A stretch of 15,570 bases of DNA, from the sequence record MZ666939.1, one strand, 5' to 3'. The notes beneath the pieces were generated by a model. The model had not been told where the DNA came from. It saw only the letters and a program-made list of their open reading frames with translations, and did no database searches. The translations under genes and the position numbers were made by a program. This document shows, piece after piece, positions 1 to 15,570 of the stretch; position 1 is the first letter of the stretch; every line of letters starts with the position of its first letter.

Positions 1-48
1 CCCCCCCACTATAATTCATCTCTGGGCTTCCTTCTCCTGTTCGGTGGC

Positions 49-67
49 GTTCCGTTCAGAACGGAAC
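49..67. repeat. 19-bp palindrome GTTCCGTTC-A-GAACGGAAC
   Basis: 49-57 is the exact reverse complement of 59-67. The same arm GTTCCGTTC recurs at 15526-15534. Confidence 0.95.
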
Positions 68-128
68 TGTTCTAAACCTAACTAGTTGCGTCTATTGGCT
101 TTCATACTAATCATACTCTTAATCGAAT

Positions 129-155
129 CAGAACATATATATACAGAACAGAACA
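129..155. repeat. CAGAACA iteron-like copies (reverse complement of the TGTTCTG units at the right end)
   Basis: CAGAACA at 129-135 and CAGAACAGAACA at 144-155. Confidence 0.6.
135..143 (+). promoter_or_regulatory. Candidate TATA box for the first operon
   Basis: ATATATATA about 57 nt upstream of ATG 200, which has a GAGGT SD. Confidence 0.4.
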
Positions 156-199
156 ATCCTATTATAACCACAAAAACTATTAAAAAAGAGGTAAAAAAA

Positions 200-355
200 A
201 TGAAAAAATATTCTATGATTGATGAGCTTGTAATCATACTAAAAAAGGTTCAAGATAATGCTTTAAATTGTACTTCTAATCAGGTTTCTAAAATAGACTA
301 TTCAGAACTTAGAAATATAGCAAAAGAATTTGCTAATAAGCATTATAATGAATAG
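200..355 (+). CDS. Hypothetical protein, 51 aa (start revised from TTG 86 to ATG 200)
   Basis: GAGGT-A8-TG initiation context. The 86-199 extension runs through the repeat region. Confidence 0.7.
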   Translation: MKKYSMIDELVIILKKVQDNALNCTSNQVSKIDYSELRNIAKEFANKHYNE

Positions 356-386
356 GCAATAGTAAAATAAGAGATGATAAAAAAAA

Positions 387-539
387 ATGGTTGAAAAAAT
401 AGCGCAATGGATTAAAGAAATGGAAAAAGAATTAACTAAGAAATATCAGGATTTCTTTGAAAACAGAACGAGTTATACCGATGAGGAAATAAAAGAACTT
501 GTAGAAAAAGCAATAGGAAAACAATTCAAAAAAAACTAA
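387..539 (+). CDS. Small helical hypothetical protein, 50 aa (MVEKIAQWIKEMEKELTKK...), not in ORF track
   Basis: Manual translation. GAGATGAT SD-like motif 8 nt upstream. Fills the gap between neighbours. Confidence 0.75.
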   Translation: MVEKIAQWIKEMEKELTKKYQDFFENRTSYTDEEIKELVEKAIGKQFKKN

Positions 540-711: not shown

Positions 712-1038
712 ATGGTTGGAAAAAGAGAAATCGCAGACATATTAGATGTATCTGAAATTGATTTAGATTGGATATTAAATAATTATAGGGAAATATGGAA
801 TGGCTCTCCAGAACATTTAGAATTGATTGATAGAATACAAGGACAAATTTTCTCTATAACTAATAGATTATATTTACTTAGAAGTAGGATTGAATACGAT
901 ATAAATAAAGGAAATACAAATAGAAGAATTTCAAGAGCTGTGGATAACGCAAGTAAAAAAGTTGGAAATTTATTCTTAGCCTTCCTAAATTTTGAAGAAG
1001 TAAAATATTATAATCTTAAAAGAAAATTAATCAATTAG
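712..1038 (+). CDS. Protein with N-terminal HTH-like motif (start revised to 712, alternative 700)
   Basis: KREIADILDVSEIDLDWIL resembles a helix-turn-helix. The 649 start overlaps the upstream Zn-ribbon gene. Confidence 0.65.
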   Translation: MVGKREIADILDVSEIDLDWILNNYREIWNGSPEHLELIDRIQGQIFSITNRLYLLRSRIEYDINKGNTNRRISRAVDNASKKVGNLFLAFLNFEEVKYYNLKRKLIN

Positions 1039-1114
1039 ATTTTGTTTTTTAAGGTATTGGGCATTTAGCCTAATCGAAAAGCAATTAATAGAAAAGAGAT
1101 GATTGAAAAGAATG
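1039..1114 (+). repeat. ~75-bp intergenic repeat, copy 1 (oligo-T, hairpin, SD, ATG)
   Basis: ATTTTGTTTTTTAAGGTATTGGGCATTTAGCCTAATCGAAAAGCAATTAATAGAAAAGAGATGATTGAAAAGAATG, near-identical to 2134-2208 and 2514-2587. Confidence 0.97.
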
Positions 1115-1258
1115 GTTGGTTTTAAGAAATTAAAAGTAAGATTAAGCGAGAGAAACGAGAGAATATTGAGAGAGATGTGGCAATTTACTCCAACAGATTA
1201 TACTTTTGAGGTATTTGTTAATAATTGGATTAGAGTTCAATTAAGTAAGGCGAGGTAA
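1112..1258 (+). CDS. Ribbon-helix-helix-like DNA-binding protein, 48 aa, not in ORF track
   Basis: MVGFKKLKVRLSERNERILREMWQFTPTDYTFEVFVNNWIRVQLSKAR: alternating strand KLKVRL followed by two helices. Confidence 0.6.
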   Translation: MVGFKKLKVRLSERNERILREMWQFTPTDYTFEVFVNNWIRVQLSKAR

Positions 1259-1263
1259 AAGGG

Positions 1264-1725
1264 ATGGCAAAACAATATTCTGAAGTATTTAAAAGAAATT
1301 GCGTTCAAAAATTAACAGATTTGAAAGCAAAAGGGATTGTTAGAATTAATAAAGTAGAGGTTAAAAACGTGAGAGAATTAGTTAAAGCTTTAGATATTTC
1401 TAACGATTCGTTGTATAAATGGAATAAAGTTTATTTCGCAACTAAATCAAACGATAACGATGTTTCTGACGATTTTTTTGATTCCGAAACGAAACCAAAA
1501 TCAGAACAAGAAATTAGTTCAGGAGAGATTTTTGGGATTCGTTATTATTCTTGGTTTGCTAGAAATCTAGGCGTTAAAAACTATTCAAGAATGGTTTTAG
1601 TTCAATTAAAACTAGCGATTGGAAACGAATTAATTAAACAATCTGGATTAGTTGATATGAATAAAGCTAGCAAAAAATTAAGTCAGAATGCAATAAATTA
1701 TATAAAAGAACACGGGGAATTATAA
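1264..1725 (+). CDS. HTH protein with IS3-OrfA/HTH_Tnp_1-like N-terminus
   Basis: KQYSEVFKRNCVQKL...NVRELVKALDISNDSLYKWNKVY follows the YSxEFK...VxExAxxLGISxxTLYxW pattern. GAGGT SD. Confidence 0.65.
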   Translation: MAKQYSEVFKRNCVQKLTDLKAKGIVRINKVEVKNVRELVKALDISNDSLYKWNKVYFATKSNDNDVSDDFFDSETKPKSEQEISSGEIFGIRYYSWFARNLGVKNYSRMVLVQLKLAIGNELIKQSGLVDMNKASKKLSQNAINYIKEHGEL

Positions 1726-1923
1726 ATGAGTACTATTTTTGTCTATGTATGTAATAAGTGTGGTGAGAGTTTTGATGTAGAAATGGAAGATGATTTTGCT
1801 AAGATTCCTTTCGAGGGGGTATGGAGTTGTGAATGTGGTGAGCTTATTAGGGTTAGATGGGATGGGAAGGAGTTGGAATATATAAAACGCAAAAACTTAA
1901 AGAAAAACGGTGATAATCTATAA
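1726..1923 (+). CDS. Zn-ribbon protein
   Basis: CNKC...CECG; abuts the upstream stop; GGGGA SD. Confidence 0.8.
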   Translation: MSTIFVYVCNKCGESFDVEMEDDFAKIPFEGVWSCECGELIRVRWDGKELEYIKRKNLKKNGDNL

Positions 1924-2120
1924 TGACGACAAACCTAATTACTTTTATTTGTCAAGGTTGCGGAACTAAAGTTCTCGCACATATAGACCGAGAAGGTGTT
2001 TTGAGATTTAGTATTAGAGATAAGCTAATAGGTTCGGAAGTACTTCTTAATGATTTAGGTTATTATGTTTGCGTTGATTGTCATAAAAAATCAGTTTTAA
2101 GATTTAGGGTGTTTGATTAA
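1923..2120 (+). CDS. Zn-finger protein
   Basis: CQGC...CVDCH; TAATG stop/start overlap; GGTGA SD. Confidence 0.8.
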   Translation: MTTNLITFICQGCGTKVLAHIDREGVLRFSIRDKLIGSEVLLNDLGYYVCVDCHKKSVLRFRVFD

Positions 2121-2133
2121 ATTAATAATTTAT

Positions 2134-2208
2134 ATTTTGTTTTTTAAGGTATTAGGCACTTAGCTTAATCGAAAAGCAATTAATAGAAAAGAGATGATTG
2201 AAAGGATG
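2134..2208 (+). repeat. ~75-bp intergenic repeat, copy 2
   Basis: Direct comparison shows only a few differences from copies 1 and 3. Confidence 0.97.
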
Positions 2209-2352
2209 AAATGTATAACCTGTGGTGAAAACGAAGCAATTAACGATTTTTATAAAGAATGTGAAAGATGCATAGAGAAATATCAAGAACAACAAAAAGA
2301 GAGAGGTTTTTTAGAAGCATTGAAAGAATTAAGTGATTTTGGAGTGTGGTAA
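2206..2352 (+). CDS. Zn-finger microprotein, 48 aa (CITC...CERC), not in ORF track
   Basis: Manual translation MKCITCGENEAINDFYKECERCIEKY... The start is supplied by repeat copy 2 (alternative in-frame ATG 2194). Confidence 0.8.
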   Translation: MKCITCGENEAINDFYKECERCIEKYQEQQKERGFLEALKELSDFGVW

Positions 2353-2357
2353 AAAAA

Positions 2358-2513
2358 ATGGGATTTGTCGAAAGAATGAAAGAAAATCATGATTTTATTA
2401 CAGAATGTAATGATTTAGCATTTATCTTAGATATTGATATAAAGGAATTAGATAAATGGTTTAATAAATCTGAAAATAAGGAATTAATAAAACTATTAGC
2501 TTTAATCAAATAG
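2358..2513 (+). CDS. Small HTH-like protein, 51 aa, not in ORF track
   Basis: MGFVERMKENHDFITECNDLAFILDIDIKELDKWFNK...; resembles the HTH-like segment of 712..1038. Confidence 0.7.
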   Translation: MGFVERMKENHDFITECNDLAFILDIDIKELDKWFNKSENKELIKLLALIK

Positions 2514-2587
2514 ATTTTGTTTTTTAGGGTATTAGGCACTTAGCCTAATCGAAAAGCAATTAATAGAAAGAGATGATTGAAAGGATG
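2514..2587 (+). repeat. ~75-bp intergenic repeat, copy 3
   Basis: Perfect 7-bp stem ATTAGGC/GCCTAAT (2531-2549). Shares an extra 11/12 nt upstream with copy 1. Confidence 0.97.
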
Positions 2588-2947
2588 GGAATGAAATTGA
2601 ATAGAAAAATAAAGAGAGCAAATAGAGATTTTTATAGAGCAATTAAAGAAAGAGAAAATAAGAAGTTTTTAATAATGAAAGAAGGCGCAATATACGATTT
2701 AAACAAAATAGACCAAATAAGTAAATTGAAATTAGATTTTTTCTGTTTTGATTATTATTTGAATAGAAAAGAATCTAGACCTTATTTATGTCAAATCTGT
2801 AAATTAAACGAAACGTGCCAAAACAATTTTGATTATGAATGTGTAGAAACTAGCGATTTTTTATTTAATGCCAAAACAATATTTACTGTTAAGGATGATT
2901 TTCTTGATTCTTTAATTAAGAAAAGTAATAAAGCGTTGAGGGGTTAA
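2585..2947 (+). CDS. Hypothetical protein with Cys cluster (CQIC...C...C), start 2585 or 2573
   Basis: ORF track. GAGATGAT lies 7 nt before ATG 2585. Confidence 0.75.
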   Translation: MGMKLNRKIKRANRDFYRAIKERENKKFLIMKEGAIYDLNKIDQISKLKLDFFCFDYYLNRKESRPYLCQICKLNETCQNNFDYECVETSDFLFNAKTIFTVKDDFLDSLIKKSNKALRG

Positions 2948-2952
2948 ATAGA

Positions 2953-3084
2953 ATGTTATTACACGAATACAAAAAAATATTAAGAATAAGGATTTTATTA
3001 GACGAAAATCCTACTAAAGCAAAACAATTGCTAACTGATTTAATCAATAAATTTGAATTAGAACATTATAAAATGGGTGAATAA
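2953..3084 (+). CDS. Small helical hypothetical protein, 43 aa, not in ORF track
   Basis: MLLHEYKKILRIRILLDENPTKAKQLLTDLINKFELEHYKMGE; GAGGGG SD; fills gap. Confidence 0.65.
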   Translation: MLLHEYKKILRIRILLDENPTKAKQLLTDLINKFELEHYKMGE

Positions 3085-3085
3085 A

Positions 3086-3322
3086 ATGGATTTTGAGAAA
3101 AAACTAGAGATTTTTGTAAATTTTTTTTGGTTTGCTATTGGATATTTATTTGCTTTAGGGGTTTCTATCTTTACTTTAAATATTATACAAGGTAGTCCTG
3201 GTGAAGCAACTTTAGAAATGACTTATATTTTTACCGTTGGGTTTTCTGTTTTTGGAATTATTGCTGTGGTTTTTGGTTTGATTTGGTTCTTAAGTCAATA
3301 TGAAATCGTAAAAAGAGGTTAA
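3086..3322 (+). CDS. Small two-TM membrane protein (start revised to ATG 3086)
   Basis: Two hydrophobic stretches. The GTG at 3077 is part of the GGGTGA SD. Confidence 0.75.
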   Translation: MDFEKKLEIFVNFFWFAIGYLFALGVSIFTLNIIQGSPGEATLEMTYIFTVGFSVFGIIAVVFGLIWFLSQYEIVKRG

Positions 3323-3327
3323 ATAAA

Positions 3328-3477
3328 ATGAAGTGTCCAAATTGTAAAATTGTAGAATTGGATGATTGGGGATTTGATAAATATTTTTGTTCTAAATGTA
3401 AGTCAATTTTTATAGAGATATACCATTCCGAATTAAGAGAAATAAAGCAACAGAAAAAAGGTGAAGTAAATGGCTAA
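3328..3477 (+). CDS. Zn-ribbon microprotein, 49 aa (CPNC-x14-CSKC), not in ORF track
   Basis: MKCPNCKIVELDDWGFDKYFCSKCKSIF...; GAGGT SD. Confidence 0.8.
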   Translation: MKCPNCKIVELDDWGFDKYFCSKCKSIFIEIYHSELREIKQQKKGEVNG

Positions 3478-3775
3478 ATCAAATAAAGACGTTTTAAGCG
3501 TTGATATTAAGTCCGAGAAATTGGAATATACTAAGATTTTAAGAGATTGGGCGAAATTAAACGAAACAAATCAGTTCGATATGGCGTTAATGCTAATTGC
3601 TACTTTTTATAGAGCTTTTAATGTACAAGAGAGCTTTATTAGAGATAAAGGATTAATCAATGAGTTTGTAGATTATTTTACGGGATTAGAGGCAGATTAC
3701 GATAGAATGTTTGCGAAGTTATTTGATTTTAGAGATAATGTAAATAATAAAGTTATGCCTAGATTCGGAGTGTGA
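3470..3775 (+). CDS. Hypothetical protein, possible RHH-like N-terminus
   Basis: GGTGA SD. VLSVDIK strand followed by helices (weak match). Confidence 0.7.
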   Translation: MAKSNKDVLSVDIKSEKLEYTKILRDWAKLNETNQFDMALMLIATFYRAFNVQESFIRDKGLINEFVDYFTGLEADYDRMFAKLFDFRDNVNNKVMPRFGV

Positions 3776-3779
3776 AATC

Positions 3780-4022
3780 ATGGCTAAAAAGTATAAACTT
3801 CGTTGTTTTAATTGTGGAGAGTTATTTAACGAAAAAACGGAAGTTCATAGGGTTATGGGGATGCCTAATTGTGAAGCTTGTTGGGTAGAGTATCATACAG
3901 GTATAGCAGAGTTGGACGCTTATGATTATGAAATGAAGAAATGGCACGAAAGTCATCCAAATCAAGATTATGAACAATGGCAAATAGACCAAGCAAATAT
4001 AAGAAAATATGGTGAATTTTAA
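3780..4022 (+). CDS. Zn-finger protein (CFNC-x17-CEAC, LIM/treble-clef-like spacing)
   Basis: Cys pairs; GGAGTGTGA upstream. Confidence 0.75.
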   Translation: MAKKYKLRCFNCGELFNEKTEVHRVMGMPNCEACWVEYHTGIAELDAYDYEMKKWHESHPNQDYEQWQIDQANIRKYGEF

Positions 4023-4229
4023 ATGGTTAAGAGAGATTATTATTATAAATTCATAATTAAAATGGATAGAAAACTAATTAAAGGCGAAATAGAAGGAATA
4101 AAAGAAGTAATCTTTCAATATTTAGGTGAAATTCCAAGAGTAAACATACAAGGCGGAGAAGCTAATAATACGGGATATTATAAATTTAAAATTAAGAACG
4201 ATAACAAAATACAACAATTTAGGTGTTAA
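4023..4229 (+). CDS. Hypothetical protein
   Basis: Abuts the upstream stop; GGTGA SD. Confidence 0.7.
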   Translation: MVKRDYYYKFIIKMDRKLIKGEIEGIKEVIFQYLGEIPRVNIQGGEANNTGYYKFKIKNDNKIQQFRC

Positions 4230-4231
4230 AA

Positions 4232-4378
4232 TTGAAAGTAAAATATTCTAGTTTGAGAATTAAAAGAAAAAACAGAATTTTAATATTCACCTGTACTTAT
4301 TGCGAATTTAATTATTATCTAAATAGATATTATCCTAAAGCGATTTTATTGATGATAATTGAGAAATTAAATAATTAA
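4232..4378 (+). CDS. Small basic protein, 48 aa with CTYC, TTG start, not in ORF track
   Basis: AGGTG SD at 4221-4225; ends just before the T-tract. Confidence 0.55.
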   Translation: MKVKYSSLRIKRKNRILIFTCTYCEFNYYLNRYYPKAILLMIIEKLNN

Positions 4379-4382
4379 CTTA

Positions 4383-4414
4383 TCTTTTTTTTTTATCGTT
4401 TTTTTAGCTTTTTT
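4383..4414 (+). terminator. Oligo-T archaeal-type terminator ending the early block
   Basis: TCTTTTTTTTTTATCGTTTTTTTAGCTTTTTT directly after the last early ORF. Confidence 0.65.
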
Positions 4415-4426
4415 GGGCTATTTTTG

Positions 4427-4442
4427 GGAATATATTTATAAA
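4427..4442 (+). promoter_or_regulatory. Candidate TATA box of the capsid operon
   Basis: GGAATATATTTATAAA with TTTATAAA at 4435-4442, in the largest internal intergenic gap, upstream of the capsid gene. Confidence 0.6.
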
Positions 4443-4523
4443 GGGTTTAGTCTTATTCTTAAACAATCTAAATAAAACAATTCAATAAAATCGATTAAAA
4501 ATTAAAAAAGGTGGATTTAACTA

Positions 4524-4769
4524 ATGGCCCCTCCAGTAAATCGGGTAATTATGATAGTTATAGCCTTAATGGTAATTGCAGTTATAATTCCTTTAGCAAT
4601 AGGAATGATTGCTGTTATGGATTTAGCAGTAATTACGTATCCTAATGGAAGTACAGGTGTTTTAAAAGACGTTGCAGACCCTGCTGTAATTATACTTTTG
4701 ACTGTTCTTTTACCGATACTTGCCGTTATTGGTTTAATTATGTATTTTCTACCAAGTAGAACAGATTAA
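4524..4769 (+). CDS. Major capsid protein 1, spindle-virus-type hydrophobic helical hairpin
   Basis: 81 aa; two long hydrophobic helices joined by a polar loop with an NGS sequon; GGTGG SD; tandem paralog follows. Confidence 0.85.
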   Translation: MAPPVNRVIMIVIALMVIAVIIPLAIGMIAVMDLAVITYPNGSTGVLKDVADPAVIILLTVLLPILAVIGLIMYFLPSRTD

Positions 4770-11500: not shown

Positions 11501-12409
11501 GTGAAGCAAAAGACTAAAATTAATTTTAAGAGAAGTTTCACCTGCGATAAATCGATTGCAAAAGGGATTAAGTTTTTGAATAAAAATGGATTTTATACCG
11601 TTGGATGTTGTTCGGGTTTAAAGATTGACCACGATAACGAAAGAAATAAAATGTATATCGAATTTGCGGGATTAAGCAAGGCAAAAGAGCTTAAGGTTAA
11701 ACATATAGCAAATCAATTTGGTTTTAATGTTAAAAATAAAAGGATATTGAGAATTGAGAGCGAAAATGATGATAAATTAGAAATGTTTAACGATTTTATT
11801 TCCTATTTGAAATATAATTCCCAGAAACTTAGTTTAAGAGCAATCGGAATCTCTAATTGGGCTTACGATTCTGAAAAGAAAAAAAGATATTCAATTCAAT
11901 TCTACGATTACGATTTTAACGGGGATATAGAACACATTCCAAGAGAGGATTTATTGCGAATATTAGAGATATTTCCTTACGATTGCTTAATGTATGAGAC
12001 TAAGGGGGGCGTTCATTTTATTAGCTTTTCGATTCTGTTGGGGCTTCATGTCTCTAAAGCGAGGGTTTTAGAAACGAGCAAAAGCTTAGAAGGTCAAGAT
12101 TATTGGACTGAAGGAAAAGATTTAACGTTGAGAGTAAGTGCAAAATGGAAATTAAGGCTTTTTAGAAAGCGTAAAATCGTGTCAAAAAAGCCAAAATTTA
12201 AAGGATTAATTAAAGGTCCGGATAATTTAATCAAAACTTCAAATACCTTTCTTAATTCGAAAAATCCGAATAAATACGTCGTTTCTAAAAATCATTTGGA
12301 ATTTTATCGGAAATATATGGATTTGCCCGATTGGGTTTATGAGCTATATGCTGATTGCGATATGAGAGATTTAAGGATTAAGAATTACCATTACAAAACG
12401 AGGGATTGA
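11501..12409 (+). CDS. Two-domain protein: TYW3-like N-terminal motif plus AEP primase-polymerase-like C-terminal domain
   Basis: N-terminus DKSIAKGIKFLNKNGFYTVGCCSG. C-terminus FYDYD (motif I-like), YETKGGVHF (motif II-like), DLTLRV (motif III-like). Confidence 0.55.
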   Translation: MKQKTKINFKRSFTCDKSIAKGIKFLNKNGFYTVGCCSGLKIDHDNERNKMYIEFAGLSKAKELKVKHIANQFGFNVKNKRILRIESENDDKLEMFNDFISYLKYNSQKLSLRAIGISNWAYDSEKKKRYSIQFYDYDFNGDIEHIPREDLLRILEIFPYDCLMYETKGGVHFISFSILLGLHVSKARVLETSKSLEGQDYWTEGKDLTLRVSAKWKLRLFRKRKIVSKKPKFKGLIKGPDNLIKTSNTFLNSKNPNKYVVSKNHLEFYRKYMDLPDWVYELYADCDMRDLRIKNYHYKTRD

Positions 12410-12559: not shown

Positions 12560-13198
12560 ATGAATCTAAAAAAGAGAACTGAAAAAATAAGATATAATAG
12601 CGTACTTTTAATTGTTAAACATATTACGCCTTCTTTATATCAAAAGATTTTACCAATAATTAGTAATAATGTTAAACTTTTGTCAAAAGTTCCAAGACCC
12701 TCTATTCTTTTTATGAAAGAATATTTTAATCAAGATTCTGTAATTGGTGCTGAGATTGGTGTAGATAAAGGAAGAAATGCTAAAAGTATTTTAACTGAAT
12801 TAAACATTGATAAATTGTACTTAGTGGATGCATGGTTTAATTATAAAGAAATTCAAGCAAATAGACCTCAAAAGACTAATTTTAAATTTGTTTTAAGAGA
12901 ATTTGAAAATGATAAGAGAGTAGAAATAATTAGAGCTTTTTCTATAAATGCTGTAAAAGAGATTGTTGATAATTCTCTTGATTTTGTTTATATTGACGCA
13001 AATCATTTGTATGAATTTGTTTATCAAGATATTAATTTATGGTATAATAAAGTGAAAAAAGGGGGAATTATTGCCGGACACGACATTTTTGGTCATATTG
13101 GTGTTTTAAAAGCTGTTAAAAGATTTTGTAATGAAAAGAATTATGTTTTTAATATAGAAATCCCAGATTGGTATTTTATTAAAGGAGGCTTAAAATGA
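12560..13198 (+). CDS. Class I SAM-dependent methyltransferase, Methyltransf_24-like (start revised to ATG 12560)
   Basis: GAEIGVDKG, LYLVDAW, LDFVYIDANHLYE and GGIIAGHD motifs. Confidence 0.85.
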   Translation: MNLKKRTEKIRYNSVLLIVKHITPSLYQKILPIISNNVKLLSKVPRPSILFMKEYFNQDSVIGAEIGVDKGRNAKSILTELNIDKLYLVDAWFNYKEIQANRPQKTNFKFVLREFENDKRVEIIRAFSINAVKEIVDNSLDFVYIDANHLYEFVYQDINLWYNKVKKGGIIAGHDIFGHIGVLKAVKRFCNEKNYVFNIEIPDWYFIKGGLK

Positions 13199-13917
13199 TT
13201 GAAAAAGAAATTGTAGGTCAAATACCCTATGATATTGAGAAAAGGCAAAACGAAATTCCTAATAAGAATATGATGGGTTTTAAAAGCGAATTATTAAGAT
13301 TTCCTAAGTATCAAAAATTAAACCAAATCAATGAACATAGAAATCAAAACAAAAATAGGGAACTCGCCTTTTATTACGAAACAAGCGCGGTATTAGGGAA
13401 ATTACAGCTTTCTATTAAATTGAGGGCTTTAATATTGAGAAATGCTGAGAACTTTTATTCAGTATTAGGGTATAGTACAAACCATAGAGGTGTAAAGGTT
13501 CTAATTCCTGTGTCTGTTTATCTTACTTGTTTAGAACACTTTATTTTCGTTAGACGTAAAGAATTTTATCAGTTTTGTACTAAGCATAATTTTGACCGTT
13601 GTTTGAAAGCAATTCTCATAAAGAATAATACATTAAGATTAAAACTATTATCTAAAGATTTTAGAATCAAAACTATAAAGGTTCAATTAAACGGATTACA
13701 AACTCATTTTTATCTCAATGGTTTGTTTTTTCAGAAAGCTTTCGAGAATTTGGATAAATATTTCAATAAAGTAAAAAACGCTATGAATACATCAATAACC
13801 GCGATTATTTTTGATTTAACTGCACATCAATTAATGGGGAAATTTATTCTTATGTCTGAAGTTTGTCATTTTCTTGGAATAACGCAATCTACAGTCTTTA
13901 GGAGGCGCTTATATTGA
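13195..13917 (+). CDS. tfb: Divergent TFB/TFIIB-like transcription factor (two cyclin repeats plus C-terminal HTH, no Zn ribbon)
   Basis: RELAFYYETSAVLGKLQL, RGVKVLIPVSVYLTC and MSEVCHFLGITQSTVFRR align by eye with archaeal TFB segments RNLAFALSELDR...LxL, RGR...AAxYxAC and QREVAxVAGVTEVTIRNR. Confidence 0.7.
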   Translation: MIEKEIVGQIPYDIEKRQNEIPNKNMMGFKSELLRFPKYQKLNQINEHRNQNKNRELAFYYETSAVLGKLQLSIKLRALILRNAENFYSVLGYSTNHRGVKVLIPVSVYLTCLEHFIFVRRKEFYQFCTKHNFDRCLKAILIKNNTLRLKLLSKDFRIKTIKVQLNGLQTHFYLNGLFFQKAFENLDKYFNKVKNAMNTSITAIIFDLTAHQLMGKFILMSEVCHFLGITQSTVFRRRLY

Positions 13918-15186: not shown

Positions 15187-15510
15187 ATGTTAGCTAAAAT
15201 TACCAAAACATCAAATCAAATCGATTTTATTTTTGAGTGTAATTTTACTAATTTTTTAAAGAGGTTGCAGTTAAATCTTGCTCTCTTAAAAGAAAGGAAA
15301 GAAGTAAAAAGGATTATTCCTTTATTCTTGTATCCTATTAAGAGATTTGACATACAGAAAAGCGAAAACTCTCTTTTCTTAGTTAGCATAATACAGCGTA
15401 CCCCGTACCGTATCACCTCCGACCTAATCTGCAGATTAGGTATTATAGCAAAATGGTTTCTTTTGTTCTGTTATTGTTCTGGTTTGAATAATCATATTAC
15501 AAAAGCCTAA
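15187..15510 (+). CDS. Hypothetical protein; 3' third overlaps palindrome/repeat DNA
   Basis: AAGGAG SD 9 nt upstream of the ATG. Confidence 0.55.
   Translation: MLAKITKTSNQIDFIFECNFTNFLKRLQLNLALLKERKEVKRIIPLFLYPIKRFDIQKSENSLFLVSIIQRTPYRITSDLICRLGIIAKWFLLFCYCSGLNNHITKA
15422..15441. repeat. Perfect 20-bp palindrome ACCTAATCTGCAGATTAGGT
   Basis: Read directly; 10+10 self-complementary. Confidence 0.95.
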
Positions 15511-15524
15511 GACCTTAACCTTTA

Positions 15525-15570
15525 TGTTCCGTTCTGGTTTTGTTCTGTTCTGTTTTGTTCTGTTCTGTTT
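15525..15570. repeat. Pentamer tandem array, including (TGTTC TGTTC TGTTT)x2 at 15541-15570
   Basis: Six consecutive TGTTY units preceded by TGTTC CGTTC TGGTTT; more GTTCTG copies at 15465-15485. Confidence 0.9.

Follow-up and report, generated by a model that had tools for sequence, protein, structure and literature searches.

A putative terminator-promoter cassette with a covarying hairpin precedes variable gene blocks in the Lokiarchaeal virus WyrdV1

Overview

The window analysed here (15,570 bp) comprises the whole sequence record MZ666939.1 (also contig JAHLWL010000009.1) of Lokiarchaeota virus WyrdV1, whose assigned host is Candidatus Lokiarchaeota archaeon 6Rcc_78. Its left arm harbours three direct copies of an intergenic element, located at 1024-1111, 2119-2206 and 2499-2586. 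On balance, the element is probably a composite of a transcription terminator and a co-regulated promoter of wyrdviruses, and it is best read as a cassette heading variable accessory modules, similar to the promoter-early stem-loop (PeSL) cassettes of T4-type phages. A preliminary description of this DNA had proposed a portable terminator, promoter and ribosome-binding unit in front of three unrelated gene blocks. Its observation was confirmed, while its interpretation is partly supported.

WyrdV1 is a relative of spindle-shaped viruses and possesses two His1-like capsid genes, an adhesin and a pI/Zot-like ATPase, with all genes on the plus strand. It lacks a polymerase or rolling-circle gene and has 'an array of short genes' instead (bioRxiv 10.1101/2021.07.29.453957). 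Wyrdviruses are one of the few virus groups assigned to Asgard archaea. The paper describing them does not contain the terms 'promoter' or 'direct repeats' and does not mention the element, and the same holds for the element in later papers that might have covered it. In the literature searched, there is no earlier report of such a cassette for viruses of Asgard archaea or of the spindle type; its hairpin is unusual in its extended pairing and its covariation. The earlier statement that no such element was described for spindle viruses stands for this literature, but similar motifs combining a TATA-like box and an inverted repeat are known in HGTV-1, HF2, SIRV2 and SMV2.

Three copies of the element in WyrdV1

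The three copies were recovered by the repeat search as one family (D1), with spacings of 1095 and 380 nt. Including the start codon of the next gene, each copy extends from the stop-codon region of one gene to the ATG of the following one (1024-1114, 2119-2208 and 2499-2587), and from the T-tract to the ATG the copies coincide with those first described (1039-1114, 2134-2208 and 2514-2587). Gapped pairwise identity among the copies was 86-87% over 95 nt. The 17-mer CGAAAAGCAATTAATAG occurs exactly three times against 0.18 expected, and none of 200 shuffles reached three. The palindrome ATTAGGC-N5-GCCTAAT is present in all three copies with zero or one mismatch. The parts of the copies are as follows.

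1024-1114, plus strand: first copy (E1), with the 5' box TTAATCAATTAG containing the TAG of gp4, the T-tract (1039-1050) and the TATA-like TTTTTTAAGG (1045-1054)
1042-1050 with 1076-1084, plus strand: lower stem of E1; upper stem 1056-1062 with 1068-1074, loop 1063-1067
1075-1114, plus strand: 3' part of E1, with CGAAAA (1075-1080), the Shine-Dalgarno (SD)-like GAGATGAT (1096-1103) and the ATG of gp5 (1112-1114)
2119-2208, plus strand: second copy (E2), with T-tract (2134-2145) and lower stem (2137-2145 with 2171-2179)
2151-2157 with 2163-2169, plus strand: upper stem of E2, with one G.U pair; followed by the SD-like box (2191-2198) and the ATG of gp9 (2206-2208)
2499-2587, plus strand: third copy (E3), with the TAG of gp10 (2511-2513) in the 5' box, T-tract (2514-2525) and lower stem (2517-2525 with 2551-2559)
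2531-2537 with 2543-2549, plus strand: upper stem of E3, a perfect palindrome; followed by the SD-like box (2570-2577) and the ATG of gp11 (2585-2587)
346-393, plus strand: degenerate partial copy upstream of gp2, comprising the 3' leader, SD box and ATG only, 73% identical to 1071-1118

The stop codons TAG at 1036-1038 and 2511-2513 abut the T-tracts and lie inside the 5' box of copies 1 and 3. In copy 2, the stop codon TAA (2118-2120) is located 13 nt upstream of the T-tract. In all three copies GAGATGAT lies 7-8 nt before the ATGs at 1112, 2206 and 2585. It is an SD-like box and not a start codon, because its internal ATG is out of frame in copy 1 and because it has the spacing of an SD box. 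Nearly every WyrdV1 gene possesses a GGTGA/GAGGT box at a matching distance from its ATG, the usual SD of this genome. The partial copy at 346-393, which lacks the T-tract and the hairpin, was probably left behind by an older element or by a crossover.

An assembly artefact could be ruled out as the origin of the repeats. In run SRR30888626, two Logan unitigs match window 1079-2195 and 2174-4617 with 100% identity. They agree with the repeat arrangement, and their break falls exactly at the point where a k=31 graph has to collapse the 38-nt stretch common to copies 1 and 2. The element is also present in independent assemblies of related viruses.

The element in related viruses

Relatives were identified through the ATPase, for which 112 homologues were found in public assemblies, and the longer contigs carrying it were used for comparison. 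The relative referred to as NODE_118 (ENA; loci L006 and L031 of our set) encodes an ATPase 61% identical to that of WyrdV1 and harbours six copies of the element within 4 kb, at L031 1065, 1396, 2693, 3236, 4765 and 5055. Six further contigs possess one to three copies each, partly as diverged variants. One clear copy each was found in L010, L012 and L017, and one weak copy in L008. Relatives that encode a polymerase (L013 and L037/L038) possess diverged variants, located like the neighbouring genes on the minus strand. These variants in L013 and L037 were missed by the covariance model (R1) and found by a custom structural scan; the structure-based scan gave 20 hits against 1.9 expected in shuffles. 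In WyrdV1 and its relatives the element is always intergenic and co-oriented with the genes.

Searches outside this set did not extend the family. A blastn search against deposited phage and archaeal-virus genomes returned WyrdV1 itself only. Pattern scans with the BRE/TATA string of the preliminary description (BRE, B recognition element) in viral, metagenome and genome collections yielded chance matches in unrelated contexts only, and two hairpin-core patterns likewise gave only chance matches in IMG/VR. In IMG/VR, single-protein searches with the ATPase and the capsid protein and a gp11 profile revealed no relatives, and an ATPase profile recovered distant wyrdviruses only.

The copies have a fixed architecture. 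The conserved parts are, in order, a 5' box (T)AATCAA(A/T)TAG with the stop codon, an oligo-T tract whose 3' end reads TTTTTTAAGG or nearly so (TTTTATAAAC in L037, TTTTTTAAAC, TTTTTTGAGC), a stem-loop, and C/G-GAAAA with an A-rich stretch; a variable leader of 11-40 nt with an SD box and the start codon follow. The stem has 7-9 bp and the loop 5-7 nt across the family (7 bp and 5 nt in WyrdV1). In 14 of the 15 copies the upstream stop codon is located 0-15 nt from the T-tract, and the distance from the hairpin to the next start codon ranges from 11 to about 240 nt. SD-like boxes (GAGGTAAAG, GAGGTTTA, GAGTTGAT) are kept where the rest of the leader is unrelated.

Both E1 and the NODE_118 copy at 1396 are located before the gp6 block; they have 96.6% identity over 88 nt, compared with 69.8% for the gp6 gene next to them. 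The intergenic module from stop region through T-tract, hairpin and SD box to ATG is thus far better conserved than its neighbour, in agreement with the portable appearance first ascribed to it. The homology between E1 and copy 1396 stops precisely at ATGG, a position that would suit a joint at the 3' edge of the motif.

NODE_118 also possesses a second repeated leader (AAAAYYAAAACAAAAAATAAAAAAGAGATGAT..ATG), without T-tract or hairpin, before two internal genes (L006 1046-1100 and 1585-1639, equal to L031 2940 and 3479). The ribosome-binding module GAGATGAT is therefore reused alone. Directly after one element copy of NODE_118, an internal CAGAACAGAAC stands beside a GC-rich hairpin (L031 3313-3323).

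Gene blocks headed by the element

The blocks downstream of the three WyrdV1 copies are listed first, followed by the gene order of the left arm in WyrdV1 and in two relatives, where E denotes a copy of the element and HTH a helix-turn-helix.

1112-2120, plus strand: first cargo block, with gp5, gp6 (HTH DNA-binding), gp7 (Zn finger) and gp8; relatives conserve gp6 only
2206-2513, plus strand: second cargo block, with gp9 and gp10, ORFans without a homologue in any relative compared
2585-4378, plus strand: unit headed by E3, with gp11 and then gp12 to gp17b, largely common to relatives but in another order
WyrdV1 left arm: gp1-4, E1, gp5 gp6 gp7 gp8, E2, gp9 gp10, E3, gp11 gp12 ... gp17, capsid genes
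NODE_118 left arm: x and 85 aa, E, 88 aa, E, gp6-like gp11-like, E, 66 and 84 aa, E, 417 aa, E, 77 aa, E, 63 aa, 73 aa, gp15-, gp12-, gp16- and gp17-like, capsid genes
L010 left arm: E, 131 aa, gp6-like, gp11-like ... (gp6 and gp11 adjacent)

The genes directly behind the copies, gp5, gp9 and gp11, have no BLASTP similarity to one another, so the module heads unrelated genes, as was first noticed. The cargo proteins gave no matches in Pfam or PHROG. Gp11 is 5'-truncated relative to its 229-aa homologue in NODE_118. The copies are clustered in the variable left arm, three within 1.5 kb in WyrdV1 and the six of NODE_118 in their 4 kb. Both viruses share gp6, gp11, gp12 and gp15-17, whereas the blocks bounded by elements are wholly different, and wherever a block is confined to one genome, an element heads it and its genes are ORFans. 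The idea of a gene-shuffling platform would have predicted such variation of cargo between relatives, and gene order is indeed not identical between them.

Further differences among relatives involve whole modules. L008 possesses an extra module, consisting of the element and a methyltransferase gene, between two TAATCTTTTTTTT tracts (2440-2640 and 3190-3335); at this site WyrdV1 has only a T-rich terminator, before the capsid promoter. In place of L031 1908-2160, WyrdV1 has window 1927-2648, which comprises gp8, E2, gp9, gp10 and E3 together with a new 5' end of gp11. The 36 nt at 1891-1926 (end of gp7) are 92% identical to the junction of gp6 stop and gp11 start in L010 (1361-1396) and NODE_118 (L031 1883-1907), and are a relic of it, lying at the left border of the inserted WyrdV1 block. 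In addition, gp5 (1112-1258) matches the N-terminal part and gp12 (2953-3084) the C-terminal part of one 81-aa gene. This gene is intact in L009 (544-789), and WyrdV1 therefore holds two partial paralogues at separate places. Taken together, the gene orders suggest that the left arm evolves by exchange of element-headed modules.

A covarying hairpin spans the T-tract and the A-rich stretch

The preliminary description listed a hairpin among the parts of the unit. Its presence was confirmed, and it is no minor part: the hairpin is the most strongly covarying portion of the element and its pairing spans the T-tract and the following A-rich stretch. In a covariance-model alignment of 13 copies, 98.6% of the cells are paired, and 10 of the 17 pairs have changed on both sides (20 cells). 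None of 500 shuffles reached this level, and shifted controls gave at most three pairs. The picture from a MAFFT alignment of nine sequences agrees.

The upper stems differ wholly among viruses (ATTAGGC, GTTAAGC, CTTAGAC, AATAGAG, ATAAAGG, AATGGGG, TAATTAG, AATAATTC). Below them, the T-tract pairs with the A-rich stretch in a lower stem of 9-10 bp, which extends the upper hairpin. Where a base other than T interrupts the T-tract, the mirrored base of the A-tract is complementary to it in 13 of 15 cases against 2.2 expected (12 distinct arm pairs), a count in which the L013 and L037 rows carry an ascertainment bias, as they came from a pairing-based scan. All 15 copies fold to one shape with a conserved asymmetric internal loop, and in 14 of them the sense strand is stabler than the antisense strand, by a mean of 4.6 kcal/mol that comes from G.U pairs. 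Copy 4765 of NODE_118 possesses two compensatory changes relative to its sister copies. In the clade of WyrdV1, NODE_118, L010, L012 and L017 the loop ends in an invariant TTA despite the different stems.

The hairpin did not correspond to a known class. No match with E <= 1 was obtained in Rfam 15 for window 900-2800. A bacterial intrinsic terminator was rejected, because an A-rich stretch comes after the hairpin whichever strand is read, and there is no GC-rich hairpin with a U-run. A bacterial promoter and a CRISPR-like array were also considered and rejected, as were C/D-box, H/ACA and K-turn RNAs, whose motifs do not fit by eye.

A composite terminator and promoter

Oligo-dT tracts are established intrinsic terminators of archaeal RNA polymerases, and the tract of the element, 0-15 nt past the stop codon, would terminate the upstream transcription unit. 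With a terminator right after the stop codon, the next gene needs a promoter of its own. The 3' end of the T-tract is the only promoter-like feature common to all copies, and TTTTTTAAGG resembles the conserved TTTATAAAGG box located 85-95 nt upstream of the capsid genes in six relatives. We propose that TTTTTTAAGG acts as the TATA box and that transcription would start about 25 nt downstream, at the conserved CG(A) after the hairpin, giving a short leader that contains the SD box. Because SD boxes are kept in otherwise unrelated leaders, the start site should lie upstream of the SD box, which excludes AATTAATA as the TATA box and fits a start at CGAAAA. The reading as a terminator fused to a promoter is thus drawn from the T-tract after the stop codon, the TATA-like TTTTTTAAGG and the leaders that retain the SD box. 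As with promoter motifs shared within other archaeal viruses, some of them tested by experiment, a near-identical TATA-containing sequence precedes several unrelated genes and is conserved in relatives. Read in this way, the element has the architecture of the shared early or anti-defence promoters of Sulfolobales viruses, of the HF2 repeats and of the HGTV-1 motif.

The inverted repeat between the putative TATA box and start site (about -20 to -2) may be the regulatory part, in which case the copies would form one co-regulated promoter class, probably serving early or accessory genes. A candidate ligand is gp6, which is encoded behind a copy of the element and would close an Aca-like autoregulatory loop. 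Near-identity over 70-90 nt would also make the copies substrates for homologous recombination. The ORFan blocks differ completely between related viruses, and exchange at or near the elements may be the cause, like that at PeSLs in T4-like phages.

Several observations weigh against a plain terminator-promoter cassette. No purine-rich BRE is located upstream of the TATA box in the T-tract, where (A)GATTTTG precedes TTTTTTAA, and the sole BRE-like string, CGAAAAG, sits downstream of the hairpin. The pairing of the lower stem covers the putative TATA box and the first transcribed bases, which a promoter in double-stranded DNA does not explain. The bias towards a stabler sense strand hints at a role as single-stranded RNA or DNA, and the compensatory changes in copy 4765 are better predicted by a structure than by a sequence-specific operator. 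The folding z-scores, from -0.6 to -1.6, are unremarkable for AT-rich sequence, so that the evidence for the hairpin is evolutionary and not thermodynamic. The sole replacement that could be resolved ends outside the elements, on the left at the old gp6/gp11 junction and on the right 30-60 nt beyond E3. Finally, termination, the position of the promoter and its regulation are deduced from sequence.

A hairpin of about 45 nt acting as a sense-strand single-stranded RNA or DNA structure, read by a viral or host factor, would account for the G.U bias, for the compensatory differences between copies of one genome and for pairing that runs over the putative TATA box and start site. Such a structure, either an integron-like site of cassette exchange or an RNA 3'-end or processing signal coupled to U-tract termination, is unlikely in our judgement.

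Alternative explanations

In its RNA form, this explanation dispenses with the promoter. The left arm would be read through as long RNAs, and the hairpin would be a signal between cistrons. It may mark where the RNA is processed, protect the 3' end of the upstream cistron, or be bound by a viral factor that modulates U-tract termination, with the ASCH protein as a candidate. An ASCH RNA-binding protein is annotated in the WyrdV1 genome. The covariation over both helices, G.U pairs included, the stabler sense strand in 14 of the 15 copies, the mirrored interruptions of T-tract and A-tract, the compensatory changes between copies of one genome and the TTA kept at the loop end while stems differ speak for this role, and the element sits tighter to the upstream stop codon than to the downstream start. 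However, an 11-nt oligo-T is expected to stop archaeal RNA polymerase before the hairpin is made, and the downstream genes would then need a promoter anyway. The lack of an Rfam match and the weak z-scores also speak against it, and most of the difference between sense and antisense strand comes from two T/G columns that are perhaps fixed for other reasons (the TATA box's end and the +1 purine). We consider an RNA element without promoter function rather improbable.

The preliminary description had placed the promoter further downstream, with CGAAAAGCAATTAATA as BRE/TATA. There, CGAAAAG would be the BRE and CAATTAATA the TATA box, mRNAs would be leaderless or nearly so from the ATG, and the T-tract and hairpin would be a terminator and an upstream operator or activator site. 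Nearly all copies keep CGAAAA, which is as rich in purines as a strong BRE, the ATG of type-A copies lies 29-31 nt after the start of AATTAATA, the canonical distance from TATA box to transcription start, and six copies from two viruses hardly differ in this 3' part. Nonetheless, GCAATTAATAG belongs to one subtype only (the three WyrdV1 copies, three NODE_118 copies and partly L010) and is absent from the other three NODE_118 copies and from L012, L017, L008, L013 and L037. Several start codons are 11-26 nt after the CG, which is too close, and a start at or after the ATG would leave the conserved SD boxes untranscribed and without a reason for their conservation. A promoter at this place is distinctly improbable; CGAAAAGCAATTAATA is neither conserved in these copies nor far enough from the ATG to keep the SD box in the transcript, and the conserved TATA-like box is instead the 3' end of the T-tract, similar to the capsid-gene box of the six relatives.

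A structure-specific site of recombination or mobility was also considered, in which the single-stranded hairpin would be read by a recombinase or transposase, as in integron attC sites or in REP and IS200-IS605 systems. Cassettes would in that case be moved through site-specific events instead of general homologous recombination. A hairpin conserved in structure and not in sequence, strand-specific and with an asymmetric internal loop, would suit such an enzyme, and so would its position at cassette boundaries directly after stop codons, the copy number varying from one to six, the ORFan content of the cassettes and the HTH of gp6, which is of the insertion-sequence OrfA type (HTH_Tnp_1). We regard this as very improbable, since no integrase, HUH or DDE enzyme was found among 20 window open reading frames (ORFs) searched with Pfam or in the depositors' annotation, and attC R/L boxes in proper order, target-site duplications and clean empty sites are all missing; where breakpoints could be resolved, they lie away from the hairpin.

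That the hairpins prime or initiate replication on the displaced plus strand of a linear genome without a polymerase of its own is barely credible: the hairpin is specific to the sense strand, WyrdV1 lacks both the polymerase pPolB and a rolling-circle enzyme, and its ATPase is related to the pI/Zot ATPase of filamentous single-stranded DNA phages, but the elements occur also in relatives encoding pPolB, and they follow the local gene orientation even in the inverted blocks of L013 and L037 and are strictly placed from stop to start, both of which fit expression signals.

gp6 as a candidate regulator

Among the proteins encoded by WyrdV1, gp6 is the candidate regulator that would bind the element in a terminator-promoter cassette.

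1264-1725, plus strand: gp6, with an N-terminal HTH, then an acidic linker and a helical C-terminal domain (leucine zipper in GenBank)

The gp6 family matched Pfam HTH_Tnp_1 with a best E-value of 3.9e-6, and four of five homologues match. In WyrdV1, NODE_118, L010 and L012, gp6 is encoded in the block immediately downstream of a copy of the element, and the upper stem diverges with gp6: the stem is the same in NODE_118 (gp6 65% identical) and differs by two to three changes per arm in L010 (55%) and L012 (34%). The AlphaFold model of gp6 (predicted local distance difference test, pLDDT, 70.8) gave no significant Foldseek match, and the top weak hit was the IS-type HTH protein TnpE. A PDB sequence search with gp6 returned nothing significant.

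One further gene is possibly relevant to a virus-specific promoter class.

13195-13917, plus strand: TFIIB/TFB-like ORF according to the depositors' label; homologue in NODE_118 56% aa identical

Its fold could not be confirmed, as the AlphaFold model (pLDDT 44.8) was too poor for a structure search and a PDB sequence search gave nothing significant.

Other features of the genomes

WyrdV1 and NODE_118 share the left terminus (CCCCC..ATAATTCATCTCTGGG), with 79% identity over 72 nt (window 1-156; L031 1-71). CAGAAC repeats near the left end of WyrdV1 (129-154) mirror GTTCTG repeats at its right end (15465-15567), and both sets have the look of imperfect inverted iterons at the ends of a linear genome.

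An ORF of 302 aa (window 11501-12409) is kept in all relatives without a protein-primed polymerase, with 81% aa identity in NODE_118 and 60-70% aa identity over about 200 residues in L009, L010 and L012. It has neither a Pfam nor a PDB match (PDB sequence search, nothing significant), and it is a candidate replication protein of the lineage that lacks a polymerase.

The capsid gene is tandemly duplicated in WyrdV1 (window 4523-4636/4797-4910 and 4663-4753/4955-5045), NODE_118 (L031 6659-6905/7068-7314) and L008 (3288-3587/3616-3915). In NODE_118 (247 nt, 94%) and L008 (300 nt, 98%) the duplication takes in the upstream leader and promoter region, which suggests that it is recent or homogenised in these two viruses. 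The adhesin gene of L009 (3212-3715) possesses four tandem 129-nt (43-aa) repeats.

Significance and comparison with known systems

As a terminator-promoter cassette, the element would serve across the family as a cis-regulatory signature by which a set of small, co-regulated ORFan genes can be recognised, and it nominates gp6 as a regulator candidate. By analogy with viruses of the Sulfolobales, the ORFans headed by it are prime candidates for early or anti-defence functions (PMC11065993). It also supplies candidate strong promoter and terminator parts for Lokiarchaeal genetics. A covarying hairpin that embraces a putative TATA box and start site is unusual and raises a testable question on the control of archaeal transcription.

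The hairpins of attC and REP sites are similar to that of the wyrdvirus element in being conserved in structure and not in sequence, strand-specific, and located at gene 3' ends between variable cassettes. In contrast to them, the wyrdvirus element has no cognate recombinase found, carries expression signals and, in L008, travels 5' of its gene. An attC site was rejected, as the order of outer boxes RYYYAAC...GTTRRRY is absent and no integrase was found in the 20 window ORFs scanned or in the annotation; strings resembling GTTRRRY and RYYYAAC occur in two NODE_118 copies only (L031 2693 and 4765), in inverse order and next to the loop.

In the Sulfolobales viruses SIRV2, SMV2 and the SSVs, a near-identical promoter sequence precedes many unrelated small early or anti-defence genes (Bhoobalan-Chitty et al. 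2024, PMC11065993). Some of these motifs contain inverted repeats thought to bind a small virus-encoded repressor, such as the winged-HTH protein Aca8 or a leucine-zipper protein; that work covers neither Asgard viruses nor wyrdviruses (PMC11065993). The gp6 protein, with its HTH and helical domain and its gene behind a copy of the element, parallels such repressors. In the Sulfolobales motifs, however, TTTAWATA is immediately preceded by a strong purine-rich BRE, and such a BRE is lacking from the wyrdvirus element.

Among haloarchaeal viruses, HF2 possesses intergenic repeats of two classes, I and II, which are 29-58 bp long and have measured start sites and promoter activity (Russ et al. 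2021, PMC8707807). They are likewise repeats between genes of an archaeal virus, but have no conserved hairpin, and cargo shuffling is not a theme of that work. In the haloarchaeal myovirus HGTV-1, most ORFs of the left arm are preceded by a motif with a TATA-like box and an inverted repeat, which was likened to PeSLs and for which roles in both regulation and shuffling were proposed (PMC3950731). Similar to the wyrdvirus element, it combines these two parts in an archaeal virus with a proposed dual role; HGTV-1 differs in being a tailed halovirus with a GC-rich genome, and the sequence of its motif is unrelated. To our knowledge, neither a covariation analysis nor an extended pairing of a T-tract with an A-tract was reported for the HGTV-1 motif.

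In evolutionary behaviour, the element resembles the PeSL cassette of T4-type phages (Arbiol et al. 2010, PMC2839356; Comeau et al. 2014, PMC4122927), which was shown to act as promoter and terminator, to contain crossover points and to give rise to mini-circles. In each case the motif is short, composite and intergenic, has terminator-like and promoter-like parts and a stem-loop, and reaches up to the SD box and ATG. Many near-identical copies precede ORFans in a hypervariable region in both, and the blocks behind them vary from one related genome to another. They differ in that the wyrdvirus host is an archaeon (a Lokiarchaeon) and the element has no sigma70 -35/-10 pair. In PeSLs a GC-rich stem is followed by a U-run, whereas in wyrdviruses the stem is AT-rich, and the U-run precedes it and pairs with the A-run that follows; for the wyrdvirus element, moreover, promoter and terminator activity and exchange are predictions. 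Because cargo and copy number differ between WyrdV1 and NODE_118, the analogy first drawn with PeSLs is apt in the sense of an element that works like them, and the PeSL principle would thereby extend from T4-like phages to spindle-shaped viruses of archaea.

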